A stretch of DNA of 63,937 nt, filler included, from Salisapilia sapeloensis CBS 127946 (lineage: Eukaryota > Protista > Oomycota): NCBI GenBank assembly GCA_023334545.1. It is 9 parts of 9 records of this genome, joined end to end, with 100 filler letters (N's around TTAATTAATTAA, not from the genome) between each part and the next. Parts side by side here need not be neighbours in the genome. Positions count along the whole stretch, not along the records: positions 39,551 to 58,818 come from JAADVB010000311.1; 8 more parts are not named here. One strand, given 5' to 3'. The notes beneath the pieces are model-generated. The model did not search any database. It was not told the DNA's origin and worked only from the letters and a program-made list of their open reading frames with translations. Position numbers and translations under genes: made by a program. This document shows, piece after piece, positions 46,597 to 50,679 of this stretch. The first letter of the stretch is position 1, and the number at the start of each line of letters is the position of its first letter.

Positions 46597-46681
46597 CGTC
46601 CCCTGCCGCGCGAATGCGATTCCGAGTACTCAGGTGGTTCTCTATCGGTACCGTGTACCATCCATAGTAACTCGAGGAAGC
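46597..46681. promoter_or_regulatory. Putative 85-bp bidirectional promoter (EXO1 / LENG1-like)
   Basis: Head-to-head ATGs at 46596 (-) and 46682 (+). Confidence 0.55.
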
Positions 46682-47233
46682 ATGGGAGGAGGTGGACTGC
46701 GTATTCTCGGCCATAAGAAGTGGCATGTGTGGCGACGAGAGAATATTGAACGTGTGCATCGAGATGAGAGGCTACACGAGGAAGCTCAGGCAAAAGAGCG
46801 TGGTGAAAGACGCAAACGAGACCAGGAAAAACGACGCGAAGAGCTTGAGAAGACACCACCGACCGAGCATTTCCATCTATTCGGCAAGGAGGAGCGCGAG
46901 AGCTGGAAAGCGAAAGCACCAAAGAAGAAGACAGATACACTAGGTGAACAGACAGCAACAGTCCCTTGGTATGCAAAGACTCCACAAGACACTGTGTTAT
47001 CATCCAAGCAAGAACGCAAGCGTAAGCGTGAACAAGAGGAGCAAGACCCCGTCTCTTGGATCCAACCAGCGTCCGACTACAAGCCAAAGACCAGTAAAAA
47101 GCACAAAACTCATAAGGAGGACCTTCGAACGAAACTCCGTCGAGAACGACAAGAGAGAGAAGCAAAGGAAAGAAAGAAAGCAGAGAAACTCGTTCATGGA
47201 CATTCCCAAAGACCAAGAAAATATATTTCTTAG
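46682..47233 (+). CDS. Cir_N-domain splicing-associated protein (LENG1/CWC25-like)
   Basis: LRILGHKKWHVWRRENIERVHRDE is the Cir_N motif, followed by charged coiled coil. Confidence 0.75.
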   Translation: MGGGGLRILGHKKWHVWRRENIERVHRDERLHEEAQAKERGERRKRDQEKRREELEKTPPTEHFHLFGKEERESWKAKAPKKKTDTLGEQTATVPWYAKTPQDTVLSSKQERKRKREQEEQDPVSWIQPASDYKPKTSKKHKTHKEDLRTKLRRERQEREAKERKKAEKLVHGHSQRPRKYIS

Positions 47234-47253: not shown

Positions 47254-48348
47254 TTAGTTGTCCTTCTCGACCTTCTTGATTCCGCGCAGACGGCCCGTAC
47301 GGCGAGCGGCAATAAGACCAACCTTCTTACCGGCAGGCGCGTCACGGCGAACCGTGGACGGGTGACCAATGTGCTGGTGGTTACCACCACCGTGCGGGTG
47401 CTCAACCGGGTTCATGGCAACACCACGAGTCTTCGGCCAGGCGTTACGCTTGACACGGTACTTGTGGAAGGCACGGCCGGCCTTGAGCATCGGCTTGTCG
47501 GTACGTCCGCCACCGGCGACGACACCAACCATAGCACGGCACCTACAAGAGACAGAAAAGTAAGTATACGGACGGATCGACGAAAGCGATCGTCTCCGCA
47601 CACGGATACAAGCAGCATTTCATTGTAAAATACCACTTCCACATAGCAGCAATAGAGATATATAAGAGTGTGGATATGGTACTTACGCACCGCGCAAAGG
47701 CGGGAAACGTTTAGCACAGCCAGCTAGGTACTCATCAAGTACAGCCGAGGCAGTTCAACCTGAACGCCGCTGTGCCCAAGCGCATGTCCATCCGAATAGA
47801 TGGACATGCGCCTGTGCGTTTTGCATCATGTGAAGTGGAGACGTCGCAATGGGTGACAAAACTTACGCAGACGGCACGGTCTTCTTGGATCCAGACGGAA
47901 GACGGACCTTGGTCTTCGCCTTCTCTTCGTCGTGGGCGACGATGACGGCGTAGTCACCCGAGCAACGGGCGAACGTACCACGGTCACCGACCGAAGCCTC
48001 GACGTTGCAGACGATGGAACCTTCCGGGATGTTACCGAGCGGCAGGATGTTGCCAACAGCGAGCGAAGCCTTCACACCGCTGAAGATGAACATACCCGTG
48101 TACATACCTTCACAGGCAACCATGAGCTCATGGTGGAGACGGTAGCGGTACGGGTCACGGTACGTGACGCGAGCCAACGGGGCACCACGGCCAGGGTCGT
48201 GGATAATGTCCTTAACGACACCCTTAATGTATCCGCGACGCTCAATGTAGTCGAGCGGACGGTACTTGGTCGGCCCCTTACGGAGGTTCGTGTGCGAACG
48301 GAAGACAGAGCCAGCGCCCTTACGCTGTCCACGGATAACTCGACCCAT
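47254..48348 (-). CDS. RPL8: 60S ribosomal protein L8 (uL2), one 324-nt intron (47543-47866)
   Basis: [27 protein letters not shown] and [20 protein letters not shown]. The spliced junction PSA|CRAMVG is intact. Confidence 0.97.
47543..47866 (-). promoter_or_regulatory. Structured RPL8 intron with internal GTAAGT donor (47686-47681) and candidate 37-nt poison exon (47687-47723)
   Basis: Hairpins at 47780-47811 (13-bp perfect stem), 47741-47773 and 47628-47684. The cassette reads GC|C TGG CTG TGC TAA. Confidence 0.55.
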
Positions 48349-48644: not shown

Positions 48645-49706
48645 TTAGTAAACACGATCCACTACTGTTGTGGTCGATGTACTAGTATACATAGTCGTTA
48701 GATTAGTCTTGGTGAGCCATGGATGCTCGAGCAACTCGTCCGCGGTCATCCTTACCGTCGGGTCTTTTGCCAAGAGACGACGGACTACGTCCTTGGCATC
48801 GTCCGATACGAGCTGCCACGGGGCAAAGCCAAAGTCGATCTCTTCCTCACGGATACGTCGTTCCACCTCGGTATCCGAGGCTGTACCCTCTAAATCGAAC
48901 GGGTGGGCGCCGCATAAGGCAATGTAGAGCACACAGCCCAAAGCCCACATGTCAGAGGCTGGGGTGAAGCATTTGGTAGTCAATAGCTCCGGCGACAAGT
49001 ACGCCACTGTACCAATTTCATCTTCATCCCTGTCCTTTGCAAACTTGTTCGTTGGTCCGGCACTTCCAAAGTCAGCTAATTTGGCGACTTCGTTGTCGTC
49101 ACTGTCAGAAGTGAGGGCAGTCGATAGGAGGACATTCTCTGGCTTGATATCGTTATGAATCACGCCGTGTTTGTGGAGGAATTGGAGAGCTCCAGCGAGT
49201 TGTGGAGCTATTGACCGCACTCGAGTCTCTGGAAACACTCCTTTCGAAATGATGTGTTCAAACAGCTCTCCTCCTGCCACGAGCTCCGTCACGAGACATA
49301 CGCGACGGTTGTCAACGTAGATATCGCGTAGCTCGACAATGTTAGGGTGTCCCCCAAGTGCTTTAATAAGCTGCAATGAGGAAATCTCTCTCTCCAAAGC
49401 ACTTCGGTGCTGTCGGGTGTACTCGACGACTTTGACCGCTGCTGTCTCACCTGAATTGATACACTGTCCGAGACGTACAGTACCGTAGGAGCCAGCGCCA
49501 ATGGCGCCATGCAATTGCCATCGGCCGGGAGCATTGTACGCCAAGGCAGATTCAGCAAGAGATTCAGTCGATGTCGTGTGGAGAGTCGCCGCCGCGACGC
49601 CGACAACAAGACCCCATCCAGATTGCTCCATACCACGATGCAAAGCTGTCGTGGGCAAGTGACGAAGGGCAGTGTGTTGTACAGAGTTGCGTACTAATGA
49701 GAGCAT
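48645..49706 (-). CDS. CAMK-group Ser/Thr protein kinase (start codon uncertain)
   Basis: IGAGSYGTV, AVK, ELVAGGELF, HNDIKPEN, DFG, GTVAYLSPE, DMWALG and DPTVRMTADELLEHPW. Confidence 0.9.
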   Translation of the reverse strand: MLSLVRNSVQHTALRHLPTTALHRGMEQSGWGLVVGVAAATLHTTSTESLAESALAYNAPGRWQLHGAIGAGSYGTVRLGQCINSGETAAVKVVEYTRQHRSALEREISSLQLIKALGGHPNIVELRDIYVDNRRVCLVTELVAGGELFEHIISKGVFPETRVRSIAPQLAGALQFLHKHGVIHNDIKPENVLLSTALTSDSDDNEVAKLADFGSAGPTNKFAKDRDEDEIGTVAYLSPELLTTKCFTPASDMWALGCVLYIALCGAHPFDLEGTASDTEVERRIREEEIDFGFAPWQLVSDDAKDVVRRLLAKDPTVRMTADELLEHPWLTKTNLTTMYTSTSTTTVVDRVY

Positions 49707-50679
49707 GCTTGATGATGCTGTTGTAGAACCGGAAATGAAAATGACGTCTATGCGAAAACTTTGAAATGGGTGCACTCGATTCGCGTCCTCGTGTTCCAAC
49801 CTGCACTCTTGTCGTTGATCGCGTCTTATCCTGCAGATCAGAAATGAGGCTAGCAAAGTAATCGACAAAATGGGAAGACTTGCGTCAGATAGTGAATCTT
49901 TTAGCATGATGTGAGCACGGACGTTGCTTCAATAATCGTAATTTCACTTCATGGACCAGATATGTACGACGGTAGTGATAGATCAGAGGTACAGAGGGAT
50001 ATTTATCATAAGTCTTATTGCGTGCTTCCTGTACGGATGAGATTTTCATGTCGACCGTCAATTACAGGCGACTAAGCTTGTCACACTGAAGAGCTGCATT
50101 GCTCAACTACGCGCATAGCTAGTAGATTGACGTGCTAGTTTTATTCTACTAGATACTGTTTGTAACTTGGTTCAAAGACGCAACTATTGCGTTCGAGCAA
50201 GTGTCCCTGCTACGCCAAGAATGGATGTACTCTTCCGTGATTGGCATCAGCCTACATCCTCGTGTTCAGAGCATAAACACAAATATCATCGTGCTGTGTA
50301 GGCTGACTTGCGTCGGTCTCACCGGCACTTGGCATCCTCCGCTCAAAAGTTTCCTTCCGTCCAAATCACGCTAGTCGCTTTGCGATACGCCTGTCGTAGA
50401 TTCGACGCACTCCAATTACATCAACTGCTGTGAGTTCAGGGATATCCAGCTTTCAGCGTCTCCGCATTAACGATAATCTAGCATGAATTCGCTCTGTTTG
50501 CTTCCTTTGTCCTCTACTTCCTCCAGATCTGATCCATTGTACTCACTAGATGCGTTCTCTCTTTCCACAGCTGCGTATATCCTTCCATCGTATCGACAGA
50601 TTTACCTCAGGCATTCACATTTTGTCGATAACTCGTTAAAAGCTACTTTAGGACGGAAACGTGCATCGTATTCTTATAT

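Follow-up and report, generated by a model that had tools for sequence, protein, structure and literature searches.

We found that the only intron of the uL2 (RPL8) gene of the oomycete Salisapilia sapeloensis CBS 127946 carries a conserved module, in which a short RNA hairpin is fused to a second consensus 5' splice site (the internal donor). This module is very likely a splicing-control element, since the internal donor and the hairpin are kept in every related oomycete gene examined. The element is solid, and its function is what we infer. Positions refer to the window, the whole stretch of 63,937 nucleotides (filler included) that was analysed, and the uL2 gene lies on its minus strand.

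Exon 1 of uL2 (48348 to 47867, minus strand) starts with the ATG at 48348, comprises 160 codons plus two bases, ends in TCTGC, and is covered by RNA contigs. Exon 2 (47542 to 47254, minus strand) closes with the stop codon at 47256-47254. Profile searches with the exons handled separately matched both to Pfam Ribosomal_L2, exon 1 to Ribosomal_L2_N and L2_C and exon 2 to positions 64-118 of the Ribosomal_L2_C profile. The top protein matches are oomycete uL2/RPL8 proteins with 74-80% identity. Between the exons lies a phase 2 intron of 324 nt (47866 to 47543, minus strand), which is unusually long here since another intron in the same piece has about 53 nt. It begins with GTAAGT; the true donor, GC/GUAAGUU with U at +7 (47866-47861, minus strand), is established by RNA junction contigs, and the acceptor AG is at 47544-47543. 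When exon 1 is read on into the intron, the frame continues as GCG TAA and terminates after codon 160 plus one.

The likely branch region is UACUUAC (47566-47560, minus strand), a putative assignment in which the branch A, at 47561, is 18 nt upstream of the acceptor; branch-like CTAAC or CTGAC is found at the equivalent place in orthologues. We observed that ACUUAC (47565-47560) is exactly complementary to the two GUAAGU donors (47866-47861 and 47686-47681), and that it pairs with the first donor in the minimum-free-energy fold of the window intron.

The gene directly upstream of uL2 encodes a protein kinase (48645-49907, minus strand). The same kinase-uL2 order is present in most of the orthologous loci, among them those of Saprolegnia, Aphanomyces, Phytophthora and Pythium as well as L001-L007, and is a case of deep gene-order conservation. 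On the other side, a convergent ORF of 199 aa, rich in K, E and R (46634-47233, plus strand), has its end 21 nt away from the stop codon of uL2, and gave no Pfam match. RNA contigs of the runs X1 and X2 extend 590 to >1200 nt beyond the uL2 stop codon and cross this ORF, which makes an overlap of the two genes at their 3' ends probable.

A sequence-only reading of the same DNA had proposed that this intron holds a switch for regulatory unproductive splicing. Its description of the sequence was accurate: the intron length and the normal donor TCTGC/GTAAGT at 47866, a second donor GGTGC/GTAAGT with its G at 47686 (GTAAGT 47686-47681), a TAG at 47726-47724, a segment of 37 nt (47723 to 47687) that reads A-W-L-C-stop after the GC of exon 1, and an immediate stop (GCG TAA) when the internal donor is used. 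A single extra GTAAGT in 324 nt is not rare and has little meaning by itself, because the whole window contains 7 against 6.9 expected, which corresponds to about 0.08 per intron strand. The internal donor goes beyond chance in that the site and the hairpin preceding it recur in all 14 orthologous introns.

The 14 orthologous uL2 loci were fetched and compared under the labels L001-L014, L025 and L027. They include Saprolegnia parasitica (L008), Aphanomyces euteiches (L009 and L010), Phytophthora fragariaefolia (L011) and Pythium oligandrum (L012); L013, L014 and L027 group with Albugo, and L025 is a metagenome contig from a marine AT-rich lineage. Intron position and phase are identical in all 14, with intron lengths of 152-454 nt. 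Many database relatives are ORF calls of 161 aa, that is, exon 1 read into GTAA. Gene callers give such ORFs because in every species the read-through of exon 1 ends at an immediate stop, and the ORFs already show that these relatives share the intron position. Conservation of the internal donor across oomycete RPL8 introns, which the earlier reading had named as a check on its proposal, was present in 14/14 orthologous loci.

In the window, the module spans 47704 to 47680 on the minus strand. It consists of the 5' arm C-CCGC (47704-47700), the loop CUUUGC (47699-47694), the 3' arm GCGG (47693-47690), the letters U, G and C (47689-47687) and then the internal donor GUAAGUA (47686-47680), and is immediately preceded by a U-rich run (47707-47705). 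We identified 21 instances in the 14 loci, with one or two copies per intron, and their consensus of 24 nt is C-CCGC, a loop of 3-7 nt, and GCGG-U-G-N-GUAAGUA. A covariance model, R2, was built from nine instances and searched against 125 kb on both strands. It recovered all 21 instances at E <= 3e-7 (the window module at 28.8 bits, E 1.5e-8), always in the orientation of the transcript. Since the next best match over these 125 kb reached only E 0.17, the module is confined to the uL2 intron within the sampled oomycete DNA. We also aligned the window intron locally, with the splice-site ends removed, to each of 11 orthologous introns, and the best alignment fell on 47672-47708 in 11/11. The module is the sole segment of the intron that can be aligned between distant species.

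The stem of the module is paired in 100% of the 21 instances, and four pairs never vary. One stem pair is changed on both sides, from G-C to A-U, in the first copies of L013 and L027 (CCGC/GCGG to CCAC/GUGG); this double change may be a single evolutionary event. The loop varies freely in length (3-7 nt) and in letters, as would suit an RNA hairpin better than a DNA site of fixed spacing. The internal donor is GUAAGUA, with A at +7, in 20/21 instances, usually as GUAAGUAU or GUAAGUAC, and the true donor is GUAAGUU, with U at +7, in 13/14 loci. Against the canonical U1 5' end, which may not be the U1 of these organisms, the internal donor gains one or two pairs over the true donor. Between the last internal donor and the shared acceptor there are 68-192 nt, with one branch-like motif (CTAAC, CTGAC or CTTAC) near the acceptor, so by its placement the internal donor could work with the normal 3' splice site. 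The predicted accessibility of true and internal donors showed no consistent difference. Two other classes of site were ruled out: a recursive splice site, as no AG immediately precedes the internal GU, and a U12-type donor, as GUAUCC follows the site in few species only. A metagenome scan for CCCGC-N3-10-GCGGTGAGTAAGTA gave 10 matches and no extra oomycete loci; these matches are at chance level, since none of them adjoins uL2 exons.

Two copies of the module, 25-28 nt apart, are present in 8/14 loci (L002-L005, L009/L010, L013/L014, L025 and L027), an arrangement that reads as a tandem duplication, and a single copy is present in 6/14, the window included. The short introns of L013, L025 and L027 (152-178 nt) have little content besides the two modules. 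Just after the single module of three loci, we observed remnants rich in CCGCC or CCCG (intron positions 205-235 in L006, 222-250 in L007 and 123-140 in L008). As they resemble a decayed second module, the tandem pair may be ancestral. In a tree of exon 1 (160 aa), L025 and P0024, an orthologue compared as protein only, fell with the ochrophyte outgroups and not with the named oomycetes (support 94/92, weak data). The module may therefore predate the oomycetes, because L025, near the ochrophytes in this tree, has two perfect modules.

We searched four RNA-like runs as assembled contigs, a form of data from which rare variants are lost. X1 and X2, from the same organism, match the window exactly and have the character of RNA; X5 and X6 come from a relative about 97% identical to it. 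The junction of exon 1 to exon 2, which skips the 324 nt, was found in all four runs, with word depths of 7054 (X1), 8518 (X2), 784 (X5) and 538 (X6). The whole intron appeared in X1 and X2 as one unbranched contig of 382 nt (47513-47894) at depths of 55 and 71, and in X5 and X6 as low-depth pieces (11 and 2.7). By the depth of the X1 and X2 contigs, unspliced intron amounts to about 0.8% of the junction, that is, about 99% is spliced. No junction involving 47686 or 47723 was found in the contigs of the four runs, which bounds the abundance of such products but leaves room for rare use, above all if the product is an NMD target. The X5/X6 relative has nine differences in the intron and none in the module, too few for significance. 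The intron contigs of X5 and X6 both stop at 47561, on the predicted branch A of UACUUAC and 17-18 nt away from the acceptor; low coverage, a local difference or an end related to the lariat are possible causes.

The explanation that we favour, with about even confidence, is that the module is a conserved U1 site of the alternative or decoy kind, with its stem-loop as the gate, and that it diverts pre-mRNA to a form with an immediate stop (GCG-UAA). The long uL2 intron would then exist to carry this cis-acting RNA module. The module would bind U1 snRNP and act as an alternative or decoy donor, and its competition with the true donor would depend on a factor that occupies the invariant stem, in the simplest case free uL2. 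RNA that used the internal donor, or that was held unspliced, would retain the 5' part of the intron, where an in-frame UAA directly follows codon 160. Such RNA could not make uL2 and would be removed by NMD or nuclear decay, which would lower the output of uL2. U1 binding, donor use, decay of the products and uL2 as sensor are steps that we infer, and uL2 is the simplest candidate for the regulator on the stem by analogy with other ribosomal protein genes. The distal true donor is used at about 99% at steady state, although the internal donor is nearer the acceptor and has the stronger consensus. Either the internal site would be mostly masked, or the products of the internal donor would be efficiently destroyed. 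A U1-bound internal site nearer the acceptor should win unless masked, and this counts against the explanation.

A more specific form of this proposal is possible, but we hold it only tentatively. Here the module would be a uL2-sensing riboregulator, oomycete-wide or older, whose stem mimics part of the uL2 site of 28S rRNA and gates a super-consensus U1 site, so that excess uL2 leads to use of the decoy donor and to decay. In autoregulation of this kind the protein would bind its own pre-mRNA, often at a place that resembles rRNA, and the module bears what we take to be a faint likeness to the H68/H69 junction of 28S rRNA.

It is rather unlikely that the module has instead a positive, housekeeping role, in which it recruits U1 snRNP and aids the true donor or suppresses premature cleavage and polyadenylation, with no feedback and no unproductive isoform. 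Such a role fits the RNA contigs, which show efficient splicing through the normal junction alone, and it suits a module that comes close to a perfect U1-type site; introns here have mostly about 50 nt, and a long one might need help. However, the short introns of L013, L025 and L027 consist mostly of two modules, which makes the module look like the cause of the length rather than its remedy. The true donor is already a consensus GUAAGU, and a housekeeping role would leave unexplained why the module is restricted to one gene and attached to an invariant stem.

The window intron folds far better than shuffled sequences (z -7.5, and -7.0 in a second computation). Orthologous introns are mostly better than shuffles as well (z -1.3 to -4.8, with one exception; six loci at -3.5 to -4.8). 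In the 5' half of the intron, the predicted fold contains a perfect hairpin of 13 bp with a loop of 6 nt (47811-47780, minus strand), and hairpins of other sequence stand at this place in L006, L007 and L011. Three of the X5/X6 differences (47782, 47785 and 47786) lie in its 3' arm, and each turns a Watson-Crick pair into a G-U pair in the sense RNA; this is suggestive only, as transitions would give such an outcome by chance about 1 time in 8. A second, weaker conserved block, GGGCACAGCGGCG (47777-47765, minus strand), forms a helix with GCUGUGCU at about 47711-47718 in the minimum-free-energy fold. The block is present as GGGGCACGGCGGCGC in L006, L007 and L011, and as GGGCACGGGCGG in L012. 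The window, L006, L007, L011 and L012 show a similar order of elements, namely a hairpin of variable sequence, the block GGGCAC(R)GCGGCG, the second helix, the U-rich run and the module. This possibly marks a larger structured domain in front of the module. Covariation could not be scored from the MAFFT and RNAalifold consensus of five long introns, whose alignment was too poor. As the short introns are without this domain, it is accessory and not part of the core.

This structure bears on another reading, in which the intron gives rise to a stable non-coding RNA (snoRNA-like, miRNA-like or other) and the module is a part of it or a processing signal. We consider this improbable. The strong structure of the window intron and of the six other loci, a perfect hairpin that stays paired in the sense RNA despite the changes in a relative, and the fact that introns of ribosomal protein genes often host small RNAs would all agree with it. 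However, no Rfam family was assigned; with Rfam 15, only sub-threshold miRNA-hairpin noise was seen in the window gene and nothing in 9 orthologous loci. C/D and H/ACA boxes are absent as well, and a snoRNA host was ruled out for lack of these motifs. The conservation is limited to about 24-30 nt, with the structured 5' domain missing from the short introns, and the depth of the intron in contigs is flat and low, though contigs cannot reveal small RNA.

The mechanism of the sequence-only reading, a poison cassette exon of 37 nt with the reading A-W-L-C-stop (47723-47687, minus strand) that is included through the acceptor AG at 47725-47724 and the internal donor, is very improbable. The sequence allows this putative exon, with a YAG acceptor, a weak branch-like UUGAU upstream, an upstream intron of 143 nt and the in-exon stop. 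However, the acceptor and branch site upstream of the module are not conserved in orthologues: nothing conserved corresponds to the TAG acceptor at 47724, the close relatives L002-L005 differ there, and distant species show only scattered AGs where the acceptor would lie. L013, L025 and L027 physically cannot accommodate the cassette: their first module donor follows the true donor after only 63, 62 and 47 nt, respectively, too little for a mini-intron plus an exon. Its junction is absent from the RNA contigs, from whose assembly rare forms are dropped. The conserved feature, as the orthologous introns indicate, is the donor with its hairpin, not the cassette. The idea of regulatory unproductive splicing is supported in one part, an internal donor that is deeply conserved, specific to uL2 and whose use would put a stop right after exon 1, and finds no support in the other, the cassette exon.

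Least probable of all is a DNA-level element (a transcription-factor site, an intronic enhancer or a promoter): the T-rich stretch followed by CCCGCC, the resemblance of UUUCCCGCC to an E2F-type site and the palindromic CCGC..GCGG arms would suit one, but the arm spacing of 3 to 7 nt is unlike that of a fixed dimeric site, the change from CCGC/GCGG to CCAC/GUGG keeps pairing, the invariant part runs on into GUAAGUA, and the orientation is always that of the transcript.

The proposed stem-gated U1 site has parallels in known systems. RPL30 and RPS14B are related cases in yeast. Yeast Rpl22 controls the splicing of RPL22B via an intronic stem-loop (PMC4838235). The genes RPL22B, RPL30 and RPS14B share with uL2 a conserved RNA structure in or next to the intron of a ribosomal protein gene. 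In the yeast genes, this structure lowers the productive splicing of the own pre-mRNA, which for uL2 is our proposal. The yeast protein blocks a single donor, whereas in uL2 the stem is fused to a second donor of stronger consensus and is often duplicated.

Ribosomal protein genes are also subject to alternative splicing coupled to NMD, as in rpl-3, rpl-7a, rpl-10a and rpl-12 of C. elegans and in mammalian RPL3, RPL12 and others. There, an alternative site in a conserved intron leads to a premature stop, and the intron sequence is kept across species, as it is in uL2. In contrast to these cases, uL2 concerns a stramenopile, another gene and a defined architecture of hairpin plus donor, and only the normal junction is seen in the contigs.

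Tandem repeats of U12-type 5' splice sites (USSE) were reportedly described by Verbeeren et al. in 2010 in the U11-48K and U11/U12-65K genes. Like the uL2 module, they are tandem copies of a consensus 5' splice site that are deeply conserved in an intron and are not the main donor. Binding of a snRNP to the USSE switches splicing to an NMD-prone form, which for the uL2 module is proposed. However, the USSE is U12-type, senses the level of U11 snRNP and activates an upstream 3' splice site, whereas the uL2 module is U1-type and each copy has its own stem-loop. The host of the module is a ribosomal protein gene, and 6/14 loci have a single copy.

Pseudo-5' splice sites are also known from the third intron of the Drosophila P element, where PSI and U1 form a decoy. 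In this case, donor-like sites close to the real donor attract U1 without being productive, and splicing is inhibited, as is proposed for uL2. Unlike the uL2 module, the P-element sites lie in the upstream exon, are regulated by tissue through PSI, and involve neither a stem-loop nor a ribosomal protein. We found no description in the literature of uL2 splicing control or of such an element in oomycetes.

To our knowledge, oomycete introns are otherwise short and fast-evolving, and for this reason the near letter-for-letter conservation of 24 nt from Saprolegnia to Phytophthora, Albugo-like and marine lineages indicates strong selection on the module. It is a defined element that is testable in transformable oomycetes, and its covariance model can be used to survey stramenopiles. 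If the module is a feedback switch, splicing-based control of ribosomal protein dosage would extend to stramenopiles and to uL2, a core protein of the peptidyl-transferase centre for which no such loop is on record, and the compact fusion of a stem to a consensus donor would offer an architecture in which the gating of competing donors can be studied. If the tentative uL2-sensing riboregulator is true, it would provide both uL2 and the stramenopiles with their first described splicing feedback loop, one whose building block is a modular stem-plus-donor unit that can be duplicated.
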